From positions 1 through 11,507 of the forward strand of contig CDMY01000909.1 in the NCBI GenBank assembly GCA_001179505.1: a stretch of 11,507 nucleotides of DNA. The letters are read 5' to 3'. The translations under genes and the position numbers were made by a program. This DNA comes from Vitrella brassicaformis CCMP3155 (lineage: Eukaryota; Protista; Chromerida). Below are positions 1,195 to 11,507 of the stretch, piece after piece; position 1 is the first letter of the stretch, and the number at the start of each line of letters is the position of its first letter. The notes beneath the pieces were generated by a model. It searched no databases and was not told where the DNA came from. It saw only the letters and a list, made by a program, of their open reading frames with translations.

Positions 1195-1803
1195 CTTGGC
1201 AAGTCCGCATATTTTCTTCTCCACTTATGGCGGCAGCTGCATCAGCGGCATCCTGCCCTCCTCACGGCTCTCCTGCACGGACTGACGTATGCACATCGGC
1301 CTTCAATGCAGCCATGCCTAAGTCGGTGATTTTTCGGCTGTTTCTCCTCCTTTTCGGATGAGGGAGCGTGTGTCGGACTACACCCAGCCCCCTCCAGCGA
1401 CCCTCATCCCGCGAGACGGCGGCGGGCCCCCCCGTTGCGCATGCAACGCGAAGTCGCTGTCCACATGCAGCCGAGGATGCGCCTCTGCACTGACTGTGTC
1501 AACTGCAAGCGCGGCACGTGCACGAATTTTGAGTATCCCGCGGACCCGGCCGTTTGCGATGATGATGATGAATCGGATGCCGTCTCCCCCTCTGCTGGCC
1601 CTGCCGTGCCCTCCACGGCTTCCTTTGTCGATGAAAAGATGCGCGAGGCCTTCGGCGAGCCCCTCGTCAACTCCGCCGGTGGATCGAGGAGAAACGCGAG
1701 GTTTCTCATCCTTTTGTTTTTTTTTCACACAGGTAGCTTCTGTTTGTCTCAATGGGACTGCGTGTCGACGAACTGTTACGAGGGGGGAGGGGCCCCCGAG
1801 TAA
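1195..1803 (+). pseudogene. Degraded coding remnant with a Cys-rich (CXC/Cys8-like) cluster split across two frames
   Basis: Acceptor-like ...catacacacgcccatacag ends at 1194. The 1358 frame gives RCACNAKSLSTCSRGCA and the 1435 frame continues LCTDCVNCKRGTCTN, followed by an acidic DDDDESD stretch. Upstream frames carry stops. Confidence 0.35.
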
Positions 1804-2415: not shown

Positions 2416-2521
2416 GGGGGGGGGGGGGGGGGCCTTAAAGGGCAGACGTGTAGGTATTCGAGGCAGAGGATGATGCATAGGAAGACGAGCGCATTTCGTT
2501 AGGACGGCAGGCAGTCGTGCA

Positions 2522-3184
2522 CACGACAGCTCCGATCAGTTTCACGGATGTTGCTCTAAGCTGAAAGCTGAGCTGATGAGTGGTTATCGGGTTCCAGTTT
2601 ACCGGCGTGGAACCAACTTTTTTTCCAGGGGGCCTCTTCAAGATCTGCTTTGTGATACTTGCGGAGGGGGTCACTGCGAGGAACAAGTTTGCTTCGAGCT
2701 TCAAATCCGCTCACGCGTTCGCGCGAAAAACGGCACCAAAAACCCAAAAAATCGGTTTTTGGCTGTTTTCGCTCGGGTTTCTGGTGCGTTCGCCGCGCAA
2801 GTCTGAGTGTGAGTGCTCCTTCGTCTGCTCTGTCCTCACGCAAGCGTCCATCGCTCTGCGCTACGTCAAACACGAGAACCAGCCACCGAAAGTTGACGCT
2901 GCCGTCAACCCAAATCACCACAATTGTGTTGTGCTGTGTTCACACGTAAGCGCTAATGGCTTTTCGTTCCGTCAACAAGAAGAACCAGTCACTGAAAGGT
3001 TACACAGTCATCAACCATCCAGCCACACAATCTATTATCTACGGCACACTGCTCTACGCTCTGTCCGCACGCAAGCGGCCGTCGCTCTTCGACCCGCAAA
3101 CGAGACCATAGCCGCTGAGACCTTGCGCACCGCTAACCCAACCGCAATCTCCATGCAGACGTTTCAAGGTCTGGTTGATGAAAT
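2522..3184 (+). repeat. Left inverted arm (TIR-like)
   Basis: Aligns to the reverse complement of 6709-7388 at roughly 80% identity by eye, e.g. CTGAAAGCTGAGCTG, GGGGGTCACTGCGAGGAAC, GGTTGATGAAAT. The ORF-track peptides 2556..2921(-) and 6945..7202(+) are mutually homologous. Confidence 0.92.
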
Positions 3185-3497
3185 TCTAGACCCCGGCGGG
3201 ACCGGGGGATGCACACGACAGCCCTTGTCCGTTTTTCCTCAGTGCGGAACACGTGCGTGAAATCCATCTAATGAGGGGTATGACGGGCATGTGCAACTGC
3301 ACTGCCATGTACGTGTAAACTGCGATTTTGTGAGCAGACTGGGATGGGCGACGTCGAGACACGTTTTGGTTGACGGTGTGGTGATGTCGATGTGGCACGC
3401 GTGGCGGTTGGCTTGGTTGCATTGAAACGTTTGCAACCGCTCACTTCTTCACGGATAATCAGAAAAGAGATCGTGTTCGCAACGGACGAATTAACCT

Positions 3498-4238
3498 AAA
3501 CGGAGCAAAGAATGTAAGGAAAGGGATATGGATGCTGTAATCAGAGCTCGGATTACTTCGATGCACGGAAAGGAGACAAACTCCTCTAAAACTCGGGAAC
3601 GGTTTTCGAAGCTGAGGCAGTGTCAGGCCTGAGAAGGACCCTCCATGTTGGATCATCAGAGTGTCGGCTTTCCGTCAAACCTCTACATTCTCTCCTTGTT
3701 GGGTCTTTGTTTAGCATATAGGACTTTACACAAGTGAGCAGAGCATCTTTTTCCCTCTTTGACAAACCCCAATCATCGCAACAAGCCGTCTCTCAGAGTG
3801 TCTCAGACGACTCTTTAGTATTTTTAGTTGGTCACACCATGTGGTCTACTGACAGAACTGAAATCGTGGTTATTGCAGAAGAGACTTGGCACTTACAACG
3901 ACACACAAAGAAAAGCTCACAGAACACTGTGCACCTTTCGGCTTTTACACGGGCCTGGCCGGGGGTGGCGCTCAACGGAAGGCGAGCTGAAGCACATGCG
4001 TGGCTGTAAAAGAACAGAGCGGGGTGCGAAATCGTGCCTGACGGGATCAATTCGTTATCACCTGAAACGGACTTTGGCCTCATCAGTGTAATGATAGTGA
4101 TTCTGCAATGGGACGTGCCGCCTGATAAGGCATGAACGAACGAATCACTCTGTCATTCTCTCGAGTCACACGATTGTGTGCTTGCTTGTCAGTCAACAAT
4201 CAATGATGGATCATTGTCATTCATTCATTCATTCAGTC
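3498..4238 (+). repeat. Direct duplication, copy 1 (ends at gap)
   Basis: Near-identical (about 97% by eye) to 4539-5335, offset 1041 bp. Confidence 0.95.
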
Positions 4239-4538
4239 NNNNNNNNNNNNNNNNNNNNNNNNNNNNNNNNNNNNNNNNNNNNNNNNNNNNNNNNNNNNNN
4301 NNNNNNNNNNNNNNNNNNNNNNNNNNNNNNNNNNNNNNNNNNNNNNNNNNNNNNNNNNNNNNNNNNNNNNNNNNNNNNNNNNNNNNNNNNNNNNNNNNNN
4401 NNNNNNNNNNNNNNNNNNNNNNNNNNNNNNNNNNNNNNNNNNNNNNNNNNNNNNNNNNNNNNNNNNNNNNNNNNNNNNNNNNNNNNNNNNNNNNNNNNNN
4501 NNNNNNNNNNNNNNNNNNNNNNNNNNNNNNNNNNNNNN
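4239..4538. other. Assembly gap (300 N) between the two duplicated copies
   Basis: N run 4239-4538. Confidence 0.98.
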
Positions 4539-5335
4539 AAACGGAGCAGAGAATGTAAGGAAAGGGTATATGGATGCTGTAATCAGAGCTCGGATTACTT
4601 CGATGCACGGAAAGGAGACACGCTCCTCTAAAACTCGGGAACGGTTTTCGAAGCTGAGGCAGTGTCAGGCCTGAGAAGGACCCTCCATGTTGGATCATCA
4701 GAGTGTCGGCTTTCCGTCAAACCTCTACATTCTCTCCTTGTTGGGTCTTTGTTTAGCATATAGGACTTTACACAAGTGAGCAGAGCATCTTTTTCCCTCT
4801 CTGACAAACCCCAATCATCGCAACAAGCCGTCTCTCAGAGTGTCTCAGACGACTCTTTAGTATTTAGTTGGTCACACCATGTGGTCTACTGACAGAACTG
4901 AAATCGTGGTTATTGTAGAAGAGACTTGGCACTTACAACGACACACAAAGAAAAGCTCACAGAACACTGTGCACCTTTCGGCTTTTACACGGGCCTGGCC
5001 GGGGGTGGCGCTCAACGGAGGGCGAGCTGAAGCACATGCGTGGCTGCAAACGAACAGAGCGGGGTGCGAAAGCATGCTTGACGGGATCAATTCGTTATCA
5101 CCTGAAACGGACTTTTTCAGACTTCAGCGTGCACTCCTGTGATCGCTCTGCTCCTCTTTAGAGGTCTCACTAATCAGTGTGATGATAGTGATTCTGCAAT
5201 GGGACGTGCCGCCTGATAAGGCATGAACGAACGAATCACTCTGTCATTCTCTCGAGTCACACGATTGTGTGCTTGCCTGTCAGTCAACAATCAATGATGG
5301 ATCATTGTCATTCATTCATCCATTCATTCATTCAG
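4539..5335 (+). repeat. Direct duplication, copy 2 (starts at gap)
   Basis: Matches 3498-4238 but has ~50 extra bp around 5115-5170 (TTCAGACTTCAGCGTGCAC...GGTCTCACT). Confidence 0.95.
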
Positions 5336-5642
5336 TGAATCACTGCATCACTACAGACAACCCTCCTCGGTTGCTTCGCTTGGGAGACGGCCGTGATCCT
5401 GGCCGTACGTATACAGGTATTTGTACGAATGTGTACCCTCCATAAGGTATACGTACACCTCCCCCCGCCGGGGCAGCCGACGCCCTATAAAAAAACACCC
5501 ACCACCTCCCTCGTCGGCTGCCCCGCCGGGGCAGCCGTGGGCCCATGGCCGGCCACCTCGTGGCCAGTCAGGCCAGGATCACGGCCGTCTCCCAAGCGAA
5601 GCAACCGAAGAGGGTTGTCTGAAGTGATGCAGTGATTCACTG
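5333..5642. mobile_element. 310 bp MITE-like palindromic element with 72-bp inverted repeats
   Basis: 5333-5404 and 5571-5642 are reverse complements with 2 mismatches. Flanked by (CATT)n on the left and (GAAT)n on the right. Weaker inverted similarity extends to 5252/5709. No direct TSD identified. Confidence 0.6.
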
Positions 5643-5893
5643 AATGAATGAATGAATGATTTGAATTAATTGCTTAACTGACAAGCAAGCACACACTTAT
5701 GTGACTCGACTGACGCCCTGTCATTGCGGAATGGCAAAGTGTTTTGTGCTCGCGTCATGGCTCGCGTCGTTTGTGAGTTTCGCACAAGCACTTCACTGCA
5801 AATGCGTCGCATTCGATTCATTGGGGCCTGTAAGGGCTCAAGGCTTGCCTGACGCTGGCAAGGAGTCTGTTTTATGATGAGAAAAGGTCCGTT

Positions 5894-6017
5894 TCAAGAC
5901 GGCGCAGGGCGATGGCCGCTGGCGTTCACACACAGCATGACGGGGATGTATCAGACATACATGCTTTTGCATCGAATGAGTGAGAGTCCCGAAAGAAATC
6001 AGCACAACGCCGAATTC
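5894..6017 (+). repeat. ~120 bp direct repeat, copy 1
   Basis: TCAAGACGGCGCAGGGCGATGGCCGCTGGCGTTCA...GAGTCCCGAAA...GCCGAATTC recurs at 6494-6608. Confidence 0.92.
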
Positions 6018-6493
6018 TGAGCCCGCCTTGCAAAGTCCCTCGCGCTAATCCAAAACAACAGTGCAAGTACCGTTGGGTGGCGGTTGAAATTTGAGAAAGC
6101 TTTTTGACAGCGTCGTAGCTCTGGCCGCTTGCGTGTGAATTCAGCACAGCGAGATATATGTATGCAGTGACACACTTATATTGAGTTCGCTTTCACACAT
6201 GGGTCTCTGTCTCAAACGGCGCAAAGCAGCGTGCAGACAGAGACTGCAAAACGTAGAGTACATGTGCTTGGCATGGCATTAATGAAAGAGAGTGTGCAAT
6301 GAACTGGGGTCGGTACACACAACCAAGTTCCGTGTAACCGACACCCGTCTTCCCATTTTTTCACACAATGATACGGTCATAAGCAGTGGCCGCGTACGTG
6401 TGAATACAGCATAGCGATATGTTTCATGCATTAACACAATCGTGCTGGTTTAGGTCCACAGCTGTGCCCACGTTCGGTGCCTCCTTCTCTTTC

Positions 6494-6608
6494 TCAAGAC
6501 GGCGCAGGGCGATGGCCGCTGGCGTTCATACACAGCATGACGGGATGTATCAGACATACATGCTTTTGCATCGAATGAGTGAGAGTCCCGAAACAAATCG
6601 CCGAATTC
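6494..6608 (+). repeat. ~115 bp direct repeat, copy 2
   Basis: Near-identical to 5894-6017, 600 bp offset. Confidence 0.92.
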
Positions 6609-6708
6609 CGTGTAACCGACACCAGTGCGCTTGCCGCCTTTTACCCGAACGACAGAGCGCAATTGCGACTAGAACCAGAATCGTCTCTGGCAGCGTCCGT
6701 GGGCATAT

Positions 6709-7388
6709 ATTTCATCAACCGGATCGACCTTGAAGCGTGTGCAAGGAGATTGCGGTGGAGCTAGCAATGAGCAAGTTTTCAGCGGCTATGGTCTCCTTTG
6801 CGGGGACGAAGAGCGACGGCCGCTTGCGTACGAAGAGACCGTAAAGCAGTGTAGCGTGGACGATGCATTGTGTGACTGATGGTTGATGGCTGTGTAAACT
6901 TTCAGTGATCCGTTCTTTTTCACGAAACCAAAAGCGATGCGCGCTTGCGTGTGAACACAGTACAGCGAAATCTATCATGCATTGACCCAGTCGTGCTGAT
7001 TTGGGTTGACGGCACCGTCAACTTTCGGTGGCTGGTTCTCGTGTTTCACGGAGCGCACAGCGATAGCCGCTTGCGTGAGGACAGAGCAAACGAAGGAGCA
7101 CTCACACACAGACTTGCGCGGCGAACGCACCAGAAACCCGAGAGAAAACAGCCGAAAACCGATTTTCCGGGTTTTTGCCGCCGTTTTCGCGCGAACGCGT
7201 GAACGGATTTGAACCTCGAAGCAAACTCGTTCCTCGCAGTGACCCCCTCCACAGATATCCGAAGACAGATCTTGAAAAGACCCCCTAGAAAAAAAGTTGG
7301 TTCGTCGCCGGAAAACTGGGACATGATAACCACACCAGCTCAGCTTTCAGCTAGAGCAAGATCCGTAAAACTGATCTGAGCTGTCTTG
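6709..7388 (-). repeat. Right inverted arm (TIR-like)
   Basis: Reverse complement of 2522-3184 with small indels, e.g. extra sequence near 6970-6995. Confidence 0.92.
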
Positions 7389-7463
7389 TGCATTCACTTT
7401 CATCACCATCTCCCCGATCTCCCTCTTACTCCTTCCCTGTGTTTTCTCCCTTCCTTAACTCAC

Positions 7464-7597: not shown

Positions 7598-8433
7598 CTG
7601 TATACGCATGTCTATGTATGAGTGAGTGATCGAGAAGCAGTGAGCGGCATCAGAGAGAAGCACAGCACACCACCATCGCCCATTCTCATCGTGTCTCGGT
7701 TGCTTATCGCGTGTCTCATTCATGTGACAAAGCAATCACCACATAAAGCAATCATTCCCGTCAAGCAATCAGCCCATCCCGATCACCCTATTCACAAGCA
7801 AAATGAACCGCATAAACCATTCACTCATCAGCCATCCAAACCGACAATTTCATGGCTCAAAATGACCGCAAGACACATGAAGCACCCCTCTGTGAAAGAG
7901 CGGACCGATGAAAGAGTGAATTAACGGAGAAAGACAGACATTTTGATTGTCATCTTCTGAGATGAACCATTCTCGATGGCGATTTGCGACGAAAAAGCGA
8001 CTTGCGTGACCGAGCTTGCCACGATGACATAAACGGAAGAGCAGCTGCTTCGCGCTTGCGATGCAGCAAACGCCCATTGGTGACTTACAGTGGGCCTCGG
8101 ATAAGTGGAACCGTGCTTAAATGGGAAAATCGTTAAATGGGAAAATCCCATTTCGCAACCGGTTCGCCCCGTATGTGAAAAATGGCGGTTGCCTGGGATC
8201 TCCGGCGGTGTGGCTAGTGAGTGCCGCACTGATGCAGTGATCAAACTTCATATGGGCACCATCGGGCTGCGATCCTTCCCTGTAGCGTTAGGCAAGGAAA
8301 ACGTTTTACGGACAATCAAGCTCGCAGGATGAAAGCAAAGCAGAGTGCCGCAAGCAATTTTGCGAAGCAAAGTCGATGCAGAGGGATGCTCTGAGCAATC
8401 CCTGCGTCACAGGCTCCCAAAATACCCACTCAC

Positions 8434-8545
8434 CGCTGAGATCGGCCGCCCCTCTCCCCACTTGTACAGAAGATCGGCCTGATCAGTCGTGAGCATGTCG
8501 TTCCGACGCTCACCGACACCCTTGGACGACGCCTGACACATCGGC
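8434..8545 (-). CDS. Possible exon fragment truncated by gap, unknown product
   Basis: Open frame PMCQASSKGVGERRNDMLTTDQADLLYKWGEGRPISA ends at a gtgagt donor (8433-8428). A gtaagg donor at 8951-8946 is followed by an intron-like acag/tgtg/ctcc tract running into the gap. Confidence 0.3.
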
Positions 8546-8845
8546 NNNNNNNNNNNNNNNNNNNNNNNNNNNNNNNNNNNNNNNNNNNNNNNNNNNNNNN
8601 NNNNNNNNNNNNNNNNNNNNNNNNNNNNNNNNNNNNNNNNNNNNNNNNNNNNNNNNNNNNNNNNNNNNNNNNNNNNNNNNNNNNNNNNNNNNNNNNNNNN
8701 NNNNNNNNNNNNNNNNNNNNNNNNNNNNNNNNNNNNNNNNNNNNNNNNNNNNNNNNNNNNNNNNNNNNNNNNNNNNNNNNNNNNNNNNNNNNNNNNNNNN
8801 NNNNNNNNNNNNNNNNNNNNNNNNNNNNNNNNNNNNNNNNNNNNN
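8546..8845. other. Assembly gap (300 N)
   Basis: N run 8546-8845, adjacent to a (GGGA)n tract. Confidence 0.98.
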
Positions 8846-9105
8846 GGAGGGAGAGAGGGAGGGAGGGAGGGACAGGGAGAGGGAGGCCAACACCACACAC
8901 ACATCCATCCATCCACTACTTTTTCTGTCTGTCTGTCTGTCTGTCCCTTACCTGCAGTATTTAGCTCATTGTTTGTTGCCGTACCGTTCGCTGCTCGACG
9001 CCCCACAGCCCGCCCCCTCTCACACCCACCACCAGCTGCATCACTCCCTCTGCGCCCCTCTCGCACCCACCAGCACCTCCACCACCACCACCAGCTGCAG
9101 CGAGC

Positions 9106-9872
9106 ATGACCAAGCGTCCATTCCCGGACGACGCTGAGGTCCTTCCTGGGCGCACCCGCACCGCCCAGCGCGTCCTTGACGGCCGTGAGCCGCTTGCAAC
9201 GCACACCGCCGGTCCTGCAGCAGGCAGAGCGTATGGTGATCAAGCTAAAGAGTCTTCAGCAGGCGGCCGCAGACACCAGCTGTCGGTGCGGCGTACGGCG
9301 TTTCTGGCAGACGATGGCCACCTGGGGATGGGATGGCGGGGCAAGCTTGCTCAGCTGGAAAGTGTGCGTGGGAGGGAGGGACCGAGAATCTGCGGCTGCA
9401 CCAGGAGGTCTTCGCGCCGTTGGTGTCGATCGAGGAAGGGCTTCACAAGGCTCTGGGTCGTCCGCGCCTCAGGGAGCCCAGCCTGGTGGTCCTGTCCAAG
9501 ACCAAGTGCCGCGAGGGGATTCGAGCGACGGGCAAGGTGGGACGGGTCACGGCCATCTGCAGCAGAAGGGCGGCGGTATCGCTGTTCCACTTCCTCGTCA
9601 ACCACTCATTCCCTCCCATCGCACGTCCAACCGGAGATGAGCACTTCGACCGCATCGAGATGATCACCAGCCCAACCACGATGCGGCGAGTGCCAGCCGG
9701 TCCGCAGCGACGGGCTGTTCTTGGCGATGACGCGATCGTGCCCGACACGCCCCTGTGGGGTGTCTTCGCGTTCAGAGGGGCGGGGATGACCAGCCTGGTG
9801 TCGCGGCTGCTCGGCTCCGATCGGTGTGAGAACGGCCGGACCATCAAGGGACGTACGGGTTTCGTCAACACG
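9106..9872 (+). CDS. Exon 1 of a hypothetical protein gene, with one apparent frameshift near 9370-9381
   Basis: agcATG start, GC3-rich codons (MTKRPFPDDAEVLPGRT...). The 9333 frame (TENLRLHQEVFAPLVSIEEGLHKALG...GRTGFVNT) ends at a phase-0 donor gtcagc (9873). One extra base would join the two frames. Confidence 0.6.
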
Positions 9873-9967
9873 GTCAGCCTGACACACACACATAGACGCA
9901 GCCACACAACACACAATACACAATACACAACACATGGCCATGACATTGTCGCTTGTATGTGTGTCAG
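9873..9967 (+). other. 95 bp spliceosomal intron
   Basis: gtcagc...(ca)n-rich...tgtatgtgtgtcag. Splicing joins FVNT to HRLVATEDAPFY in frame. Confidence 0.8.
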
Positions 9968-10417
9968 CATCGCCTCGTCGCGACCGAGGATGCGCCCTTC
10001 TACCTCGTCATCAGACCGCTCAGCCCGCGACCCAACGCCATTCTCCAGGGCATATTCTCATTCCAGACCACCACGGTGCAGGGCGGCGGCGGCGGTGTGG
10101 GTGGTGATGTGGGTGGTGGTGTGGGTGGTGGTGTGGGTGGTGGCGAGGGTGGTGATGACATGCCCGCTGTGAAGGAGGAGGGGGAGGGCGAGATGGATGA
10201 GGAGGGCGGGGAGGGCGACATGGGTGAGGAGGAGCCTGCCGGTGACGACGAGGATGGATTTGGCGACAAAGACGGTGATGACCCGGAGGGCGAGCAAGAC
10301 CTGGCTGGCTTCCTCGGAGATGATGACGATGCTCGCGGCTTCATGGGTGTGGGCGGAGGGGCGTACAGCAATGAAGAATTGGAGAATTTGCAACGGGCAG
10401 GGAGGAGGGCTGTATAG
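9968..10417 (+). CDS. Terminal exon of the hypothetical protein; Gly-rich then Asp/Glu-rich low-complexity tail
   Basis: 450 bp open frame HRLVATEDAPFYLVIRPLSPRPNAILQGIFSFQTTTVQGGGG...EEGEGEMDEEGGEGD...RAV*. Confidence 0.75.
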   Translation, partial: HRLVATEDAPFYLVIRPLSPRPNAILQGIFSFQTTTVQGGGGGVGGDVGGGVGGGVGGGEGGDDMPAVKEEGEGEMDEEGGEGDMGEEEPAGDDEDGFGDKDGDDPEGEQDLAGFLGDDDDARGFMGVGGGAYSNEELENLQRAGRRAV

Positions 10418-10491
10418 ACATGTTTGCGTGAATCACGGACCGATCGATCGAATGATTCAGCTCAGCGAGTGGTGGACGAATGGGCCAGAGC

Positions 10492-10598
10492 TGAATGAAT
10501 GAATGAATGCATGAATGCATGAATGCATGAATGAACGAATGAACGAATGAACCGACCAATCAATCAATCACATGCATTGAATGAATGAATGAACGAAT
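10492..10598. repeat. Degenerate (GAAT)n/(GCAT)/(CAAT) microsatellite between two convergent genes
   Basis: tgaatgaatgaatgaatgcatgaatgcatgaatgcatgaatgaacgaatg... Confidence 0.95.
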
Positions 10599-10660
10599 CC
10601 ATCGCGCCAATCGACATGTCAGTCACTGTTTCACAACTATGCACAATGATCGTCAGGCAG

Positions 10661-11171
10661 CTACTTCTGTTGTTGCTTTTTCGGTTCTATCGGCACTTCC
10701 AACTGCCCTTCCTTCATCGCTTTGTCTGCTTGCTTCTGCAGGTTTCTCCAGTCTGCGTCTGTGAATGGCTCGCCCTTCCTTGGACCCCCAACCTGCCTCA
10801 GCACCATGAATGGCACGTCCGGGAGTGGGTGGTCGTACTCGATCGATGGGAGCATGCGTGTGGCGTTGTTGCTGCCATAGGTGACCACCTCGAGGTGGTG
10901 TTGGTCGACAGCAGCGAGTTGGGCCTTCTCGATGCTTCGAGTGATCATCTGCCACCCGAGCTCCCCCTCGATGGCGCCACCACCGCCCTTTGTGGTGTGG
11001 TGCCGCTCCACCTCCTTGGCCACGTGGTTGGATGCCTCGGGTGCTGTCATGTTGCCCATCTGGCCGAGAGGAGGGGCACCGACGGGATCGCGCCGACATG
11101 CTGTGAAGAAGTAGAACACGTGGCACTCGATCTGATGCAGGGTCAAGTTGTACACGTTGAACAGGTTGGCC
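10661..11171 (-). CDS. Terminal exon of a RAG1/Transib/Chapaev-like DDE transposase (H-x4-H and putative catalytic E)
   Basis: Acceptor tgtctgtctgtttgtttcag. Translates ANLFNVYNLTLHQIECHVFYFFTACRRDPVGAPPLGQMGNMTAPEASNHVAKEVERHHTTKGGG...*, resembling RAG1 TNYFHKTLAHV...[20 protein letters not shown]. GC3-rich codons. Confidence 0.6.
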
Positions 11172-11254
11172 CTGAAACAAACAGACAGACACATCCACAC
11201 AGGAGATGACACACTCAGACGCATTCACACACTCAGACCCATTCATTCACTCAC
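11172..11254 (-). other. 83 bp spliceosomal intron within the transposase-like gene
   Basis: gtgagtgaatgaatg...tgtctgtctgtttgtttcag. Phase-2 splice gives ...MRFAAIQ-E-ANLF in frame. Confidence 0.8.
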
Positions 11255-11461
11255 TCTTGGATTGCGGCGAATCTCATTTGATACAGATGGCATACGAAGA
11301 GGTCGATCTCCTCGTCTGTCGGCGCCACGCTGCGCATGGCGGCCAGCAGCACTCAAGCAAACGACCGGAAGAAGAGCATCGTGGATCGTCCGCCGCTTTG
11401 GCGGCCTGTCGTCAGGCTGCCGAAGGTGAGCAGTGTCCACATCAGACGCTCGAAATGGGGG
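11255..11461 (-). pseudogene. Internal exon of the transposase-like gene with one in-frame TGA (11355-11353)
   Basis: Acceptor gtgttgtgtcag (AG at 11463-11462). The 207 bp exon (1+204+2) reads PHFERLMWTLLTFGSLTTGRQSGGRSTMLFFRSFA*VLLAAMRSVAPTDEEIDLFVCHLYQMRFAAIQ. The gene continues beyond the window end. Confidence 0.6.
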
Positions 11462-11507
11462 CTGACACAACACAGCCATCAGTCAAGGAGTGATGTGTGG
11501 TGTCTGT

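Follow-up and report, generated by a model that had tools for sequence, protein, structure and literature searches.

In an intact CMCT (CACTA-Mirage-Chapaev-Transib) enzyme, an RNase-H-like fold bears two Asp residues, and the helix that follows supplies a Glu as the third member of the Mg-binding triad, which nicks and hairpins the transposon ends; in RAG1, CxxC and H-x(3-4)-H bind one zinc. The clade comprises EnSpm/CACTA, Mirage, Chapaev, Transib, Plavaka, ESTA, as well as Lanisha, together with RAG1, and its members have the DDE triad on an RNase-H-like fold, C-x2-C past the second Asp, and H-x(3-4)-H shortly ahead of the Glu, with element termini of the form 5'-CA..TG-3' and a target site duplication (TSD) of 2 to 5 bp (PMC12730594). 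Transib elements have a 5-bp TSD and heptamer termini of the CACAATG type, and the distance from the second Asp to the Glu (D2-to-E) is 206 to 214 aa in Transib and 253 aa in RAG1 (PMC1131882). The mouse RAG1 residues used for comparison here, i.e., D708...C727-x2-C730, D792-A-L-H795, H937-x4-H942, and E962-x2-N965, were confirmed by short queries against PDB chains. In the literature searched, no paper naming both Transib and Vitrella was found, such transposase families are named neither in the chromerid genome paper nor in its supplements, and no description of CMCT-type (RAG1-like) transposases from chromerids is known.

The stretch of DNA analyzed here (the window) represents a Vitrella brassicaformis CCMP3155 scaffold over its full length of 11,507 bp. 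We consider it probable that a spliced locus on its minus strand is an expressed tail relic of a decayed, very divergent CMCT-clade transposase. The locus was compared with three other Vitrella copies, i.e., L001 (2,983 bp; the contig of protein P0003), L002 (scaffold CDMY01001026.1), and L005 (a 160-kb contig with protein P0007 at its end), and with the transcript contigs L003 (JGI 3300017148) and L004 (SRR646408). The original prediction, made from the letters of the window, had proposed a two-exon RAG1/Transib/Chapaev-like transposase gene not evident among the open reading frames (ORFs). The spliced peptide that it gave is identical to a deposited Vitrella protein, P0001 (197 aa, 100% identity, starting with MRSVAPTDEE), and the 169-aa translation of 10664-11170 (minus) retrieves P0001 at 100% identity in a protein search. 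The gene was only partly concealed: exon 1 and the splice are hidden from the plain ORF list, but a 187-aa ORF (10661..11224) in that list covers exon 2. This exon encodes H-x4-H (HQIECH, 11137-11120), the candidate catalytic Glu73 (11038-11036), an HTTKGGG block, and a conserved C-terminal region (ELGWQMI ... TRMLP..EYD.PLPDVP), and the positions that had been assigned to the two His codons (11137-11135 and 11122-11120) and to the Glu were correct. The annotated coding sequence starts at the ATG at 11337 (minus). The features of the locus are listed in Table 1.

Table 1. Features of the transposase-derived locus in the window (X1, X2, X3, and X6 are sequencing runs)
Feature	Position	Strand	Evidence
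Stop codon TAG of the conserved reading frame	10661..10663	minus	Sequence, ORF list, frames
Exon 2, conserved frame	10664..11171	minus	Translation; homology to P0003/L001 and L003; transcript-like contig cover
Segment absent from L002, with 15 nt instead	11121..11433	minus	blastn; joint 11120->11434 plus 15 inserted letters, in four of four runs
Spliceosomal intron, 83 nt, GT..AG	11172..11254	minus	Sequence; contig joint 11170->11254 in X1 and X6; X3 unspliced only
Exon 1, annotated coding part (MRSVAPTDEEIDLFVCHLYQMRFAAIQ-E)	11255..11337	minus	Homologous to TDEFWCLG... (L001) and THEE.DNLCLHLWQM (L003)
Same transcribed exon, upstream part	11338..11461	minus	Spliced 309-nt contig; frame analysis; paralog sequences
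3' end of a further upstream intron, acceptor AG 11463-11462	11462..11507	minus	Loose contig ends at 11462 in X1 and X2

Contigs of four public runs were placed on window positions 9800-11507. In X1 and X6, which come from different studies, one 309-nt contig each covers 11072-11170 plus 11254-11462 with 0 mismatches, skipping 11171-11253, and the intron bin is almost without cover; X3 has even depth and solely an unspliced contig, 11072-11463. X1 and X6 behave as RNA because they also splice a separate 95-nt GT..AG intron on the plus strand (9872-9966), whereas X3 behaves as DNA because its depth is even and its contig is only unspliced. Since the 83-nt intron is skipped in X1 and X6 and kept in the DNA-like X3, it is a real splicing event and not a DNA variant, and the two-exon structure proposed from the letters holds. 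The intron has no counterpart at the homologous position in the paralog L001 or the transcript L003. The 95-nt intron belongs to a neighboring plus-strand gene, whose ORFs at ~9.1-10.4 kb are acidic and rich in Gly, Glu, and Asp. A (CATT)n-like microsatellite occupies window positions 10480-10600 in the 3' flank of the minus-strand gene, and the contigs of all four runs break there.

Contigs of X1 and X2 run past 11462 into sequence unlike the window, and the letters 11462..11507 correspond in L002 to the end of exon 1 of protein P0005. Because the transcribed exon reaches 11461 and the transcripts continue off the scaffold, the annotated start is internal to a longer mRNA, whose preceding exon is off the scaffold. 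In 11338..11461, the conserved frame (PHFERLMWTLLTFGSL...) is open except for one TGA (11355-11353), 16 nt ahead of the annotated ATG, and the 'ERLMW' within it corresponds in the alignment to ARDILMW of P0003 and to ARDFMKW of L003. With this in-frame stop inside a transcribed exon and an internal annotated ATG, the locus is not the intact transposase gene that had been envisaged. An intron within 11338-11461 that would remove the TGA was ruled out, as there is no suitable GT donor and the transcript contig is contiguous. Complete 132-aa ORFs in the conserved frame are found in MMETSP transcripts. A second frame, out of register with that of the transposase, is open from end to end of the transcribed part (11461-10653 minus, spliced; ~268 codons) and would be the one continued from the off-scaffold exon if the phase is that in L002; an antisense ORF (10589-11209, plus strand) is also open.

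An exhaustive phmmer search with P0001 against 1.84 billion representative proteins retrieved three proteins only: P0002, the ORF of a Vitrella MMETSP transcript with 93% identity to P0001; P0003, a 450-aa Vitrella protein (E = 1.8e-14); and P0004, a 76-aa fragment from a eukaryotic transcript contig (L003/L004). Word-based protein searches returned nothing beyond Vitrella paralogs and one transcript fragment, and metagenome scans with alignments A2 and A3 gave no match. In L001, one continuous frame (1839-2336) matches P0001 residues 12-166 at 39% identity, HLLECH included; the deposited P0003 model treats this conserved HLLECH segment as an intron (L001 1818-1997) and retains a non-conserved stretch, and the model is probably a mis-annotation there. 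The C-terminal region is also present in L003 and L004, where it is disrupted by an in-frame stop (THEE*DNL) and, after HTMRGGG, by a frameshift; therefore, a decayed relative is also transcribed outside Vitrella CCMP3155.

The H-x4-H motif takes the forms HQIECH in the window, HLLECH in L001, and HQLECH in P0004, with the Glu 26-28 residues later. Among the three lineages, whose C-terminal domains are ~40% identical, residues H40, E43, C44, H45, P61, G64, M69, E73, N76, A79, E83, H86, T87, and G90-92 (P0001 numbering) are invariant, as is the HT-x-[KR]-GGG block, so that both His residues and the Glu singled out by the original prediction are kept in the paralogs. H-x4-H followed by E would be trivial as a lone pattern; its conservation across three lineages only ~40% identical, as judged from the alignments, exceeds chance. 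The ~120 conserved residues after the Glu (ELG.QMI ... TRMLP..EYD.PLPDVP) match no known domain. The likeness of the RHTTKGG tail to Transib/Chapaev-like proteins, proposed in the original prediction, is a putative one.

P0003 overlaps the C-terminus of P0007 (702 aa) at 89% identity, and L001 nt 1-1347 and L005 nt 1325-2691 are 97% identical. Upstream of H-x4-H, the L001/L005 family carries the two Asp and CxxC that the original prediction had proposed to look for, in the expected order and with D-x2-H in addition: LCISGD495GS, FILGD588QKWIGLILGLAGSAAANPC607QRC610, PPDILH, HLLECH, and HESMN, which contains the Glu (D495, D588, and C607-x2-C610 in P0007; PDILH and C40 of CxxC in P0003). The C-x2-C lies 19 residues past D588 (C607-Q-R-C610), as in RAG1; the window copy begins downstream and has no CxxC. 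P0007 D588-C607 aligns without gaps to RAG1 D708-C727, 19 residues each (shuffle p ~0.02), while the others of the three mouse RAG1 segments compared by Smith-Waterman alignment did no better than shuffled ones, and RAG1 932-973, locally aligned with the stretch from H-x4-H to E, scored at chance level. The D2-to-E distance in L001/L005 is ~327 aa, a value that depends on the intron reading, as it combines P0003/P0007 positions with the L001 1839-2015 frame. By analogy with RAG1, the conserved residues would be putative zinc ligands and catalytic residues, and the apparent tie of the window peptide to a catalytic domain is a transitive one, via the paralog. An 85-nt repeat of 90.6% identity links window positions 1312-1396 (minus) to L005 4-88, 190 nt upstream of the P0007 start codon, and could be part of the 5' region of the element.

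Profile and sequence searches linked neither the peptide nor its paralogs to RAG1, Transib, or a Pfam transposase family, even at E values up to 10. Neither Pfam nor NCBIfam gave a family for P0001, for either of the exons, or for P0003, P0004, P0007, and the L001 C-terminal ORF; phmmer (P0001, P0003, and P0007) and a hidden Markov model of alignment A1 retrieved no RAG1, RAG1L, Transib, or other transposase from the PDB; and the Pfam RAG1 domain models, Transposase_21, and Plavaka gave no HMMER-level match for any family member. By ESM Atlas features, P0007 455-685 matches the clusters of PF26100 RAG1_RNase_H, PF26101 RAG1_ZnC2, and PF26104 RAG1_ZnH2 at 0.96-0.97, sharing 188-194 of 256 features with them, and 7 of its 10 best named matches are from one family or clan. 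The structure of this segment, a low-confidence ESMFold model, gives TM scores of 0.66-0.71 to the RAG1 clusters over 195-202 of 231 residues; DUF1280 and Transposase_21 (tnp2/CACTA) clusters are matched as well. For whole P0003, the features give Plavaka at 0.91, RAG1_ZnC2/ZnH2 at 0.89-0.90, and Transposase_21 at 0.89, and for P0001 the nearest named clusters are RAG1_ZnH2 and DUF4218, at 0.80, a lead only. The comparisons of features and of structure in the Atlas are counted together as a single kind of evidence, and the ESMFold models beneath it are of low confidence. Because the AlphaFold2 single-sequence models (pLDDT 38 for P0001 and 31 for P0007 440-690) were unusable for fold comparison, the structural support rests on the ESMFold model of the Atlas.

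The motif order of the paralog, the language-model features, and the likeness in predicted structure together suggest, with fair confidence, that the Vitrella family is a very divergent member of the CMCT clade. The earlier label "RAG1/Transib/Chapaev-like" is thus fair at the level of this clade, but it is not backed by a profile or sequence match to RAG1, Transib, or Pfam transposases. We keep the family out of Transib proper because there is no sequence or profile match, D2-to-E is ~327 aa, and the element ends were not identified. Transposon ends and target duplications were sought in the window, L001, L002, and L005 and not identified, and no repeats, inverted or otherwise, were found to flank the gene in the window. 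Elsewhere in the window, a 4.9-kb element (2518-7392) has long imperfect terminal inverted repeats, with ends TGCA|CACGACAGCTC... and, on the reverse complement, TGCA|CAAGACAGCTC...; its CA-type termini and 4-bp flank would suit a non-autonomous CMCT-type element.

That the family is instead a true Transib/RAG1-lineage transposase, sister to or within Transib rather than CMC-like or a separate CMCT lineage, is a tentative reading, which we hold as possible rather than probable. RAG1 clusters are the top named matches for the catalytic part (features 0.96, TM ~0.7), but tnp2/CACTA, Plavaka, and DUF1280 clusters are nearly equal, and for P0003 Plavaka comes first. The D-x19-CxxC spacing equals that of RAG1 D708-C727, and E-x2-N past the Glu equals RAG1 E962-x2-N965; against these stand a D2-to-E distance outside the published Transib and RAG1 values (PMC1131882), the lack of significant similarity to RAG1/RAG1L chains of the PDB and to the RAG1 models of Pfam, and the fact that a 5-bp TSD and CACAATG-type termini were not identified at any copy. 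A further proposal, which we regard as rather unlikely, is that the family forms a deep independent branch beside Transib/RAG1 within CMCT, with its own 120-aa C-terminal domain and perhaps with intact mobile copies elsewhere in chromerids or related alveolates, or else that the window tail has been exapted.

All four copies examined (window, L002, L001, and L005) are broken. In the window copy, the TGA interrupts the conserved frame and the two Asp and CxxC are absent; only H-x4-H, the Glu helix (E-x2-N-x3-K), and the family-specific C-terminal domain of ~120 aa are retained. In L002, a 313-nt deletion has removed H-x4-H together with exon 1 and the intron and has caused a frameshift. L001 has 2-nt and 10-nt deletions, just ahead of D1 and D2, and L005 has lost 1 nt and, through a 1.5-kb deletion, its entire C-terminal part; it also contains a stop, and the Asp of its D-x2-H motif is changed to Asn. 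The original prediction had placed the two catalytic Asp beyond the window end. The sister copy L002 extends 895 bp further; remnants of D/D/CxxC sought there gave noise only, and these 895 bp encode the unrelated-looking N-terminus of P0005, which argues that the two Asp probably do not lie simply past the end of the scaffold.

Window positions 8152-11507 and L002 895-4007 form one duplicated segment (~3.3 kb) of ~90% identity that includes the neighboring plus-strand gene, and the two copies are therefore not independent insertions; the second copy reflects a segmental duplication or else a haplotig that has diverged. Within the conserved frame, the window and L002 differ by 19 changes, distributed 5/8/6 over codon positions 1/2/3 with dN/dS 0.61, and there is thus no sign of purifying selection since the duplication. 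The ORF part is 95.8% identical (4.2% diverged), compared to ~90% for the surrounding DNA, and this lower divergence could reflect some constraint or gene conversion.

These figures bear on a reading that involves exaptation of the C-terminal piece: the loci in the window and in L002 would be host genes of chimeric origin, and their product, consisting of the post-catalytic domain (H-x4-H, the Glu helix, and the PLPDVP domain), would be a small protein without catalytic activity, e.g., a DNA-binding or regulatory one. We judge it improbable. Transcription and splicing of the locus in two studies, the complete 132-aa MMETSP ORFs, and the ~40% identity kept in the C-terminal domain across three lineages would all agree with such a protein, as would the higher identity of the ORF than of its flanks; the substitution pattern since duplication does not, and within a longer mRNA the ORF is preceded by an in-frame stop in the window and by a frameshift in L002. 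An alternative frame is open over the whole mRNA part, and L002 has lost H-x4-H altogether. It is highly improbable that the protein is a lineage-specific orphan unrelated to transposases with a coincidental H-x4-H to E pattern, for although it has no Pfam, NCBIfam, or PDB match, its alignment to the RAG1 segment is at chance level, and the pattern within 30 residues is weak alone, the same block ends an L001/L005 ORF in which D, D-x19-CxxC, and D-x2-H follow one another as expected and which resembles the RAG1 and tnp2 clusters (features 0.96-0.97, TM ~0.7), the motif residues are invariant across lineages, and the copies, found on short scaffolds rich in repeats, were broken independently of one another.

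The fragment is transcribed and correctly spliced within a longer mRNA whose 5' exon is off the scaffold, and the TGA ahead of the annotated ATG closes the transposase frame in that mRNA. Because the two Asp and CxxC are missing and the frame is closed, the product would be unable to cut DNA; the window copy has presumably lost its function and is best read as an expressed pseudogene.

A lineage so divergent that Pfam does not detect it broadens both the known sequence space and the hosts known for the group ancestral to V(D)J recombination. If the deep branch proved true, RAG1-type (C2H2-zinc, long D-E insert) transposases would extend to Alveolata, and the family would provide an outgroup for reconstructing the ancestral RAG1/Transib core; membership of the Transib/RAG1 lineage would bear directly on RAG origins, a link that the original prediction had suggested. 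The window copy itself, truncated and interrupted, adds one more data point for a family profile and is a case of a deposited "protein" that would be the tail of a dead transposase.

Compared to the RAG1 core and Transib (PMC1131882; RAG1 structures, e.g., 4WWX), the Vitrella family gives no significant match by sequence or by profile; neither an NBD/nonamer-binding region nor a RAG2 partner or RSS-like TIR was identified, and the copy in the window is interrupted and has neither of the catalytic Asp residues. The D2-to-E distance of ~327 aa in L001/L005 differs from the 253 aa of RAG1 and the 206-214 aa of Transib (PMC1131882), and the H-to-E spacer is 26-28 residues in the family versus 20 in RAG1, the window value of 28 (H45-E73) against 20 in mouse (H942-E962) being as originally counted. 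With respect to the CMCT clade as a whole, the family differs in that none of its members reaches a Pfam model of these groups, in carrying an extra ~120 aa after the Glu, and in its host, a chromerid alveolate. What it shares with RAG1 is H-x4-H followed by Glu, as H937/H942/E962, and E-x2-N, as E962-x2-N965, to which the paralog adds the 19 residues from D to CxxC, as D708-C727, and a D-x2-H (PDILH) that parallels D792-A-L-H795. The neighbors of the Vitrella proteins by language model and predicted structure are the RAG1, tnp2 (Transposase_21), Plavaka, and DUF1280 clusters, and the order D...D...C-x2-C...H...H-x(3-4)-H...E is that of the CMCT clade, with the paralogs carrying all of these elements and the window copy the last two.
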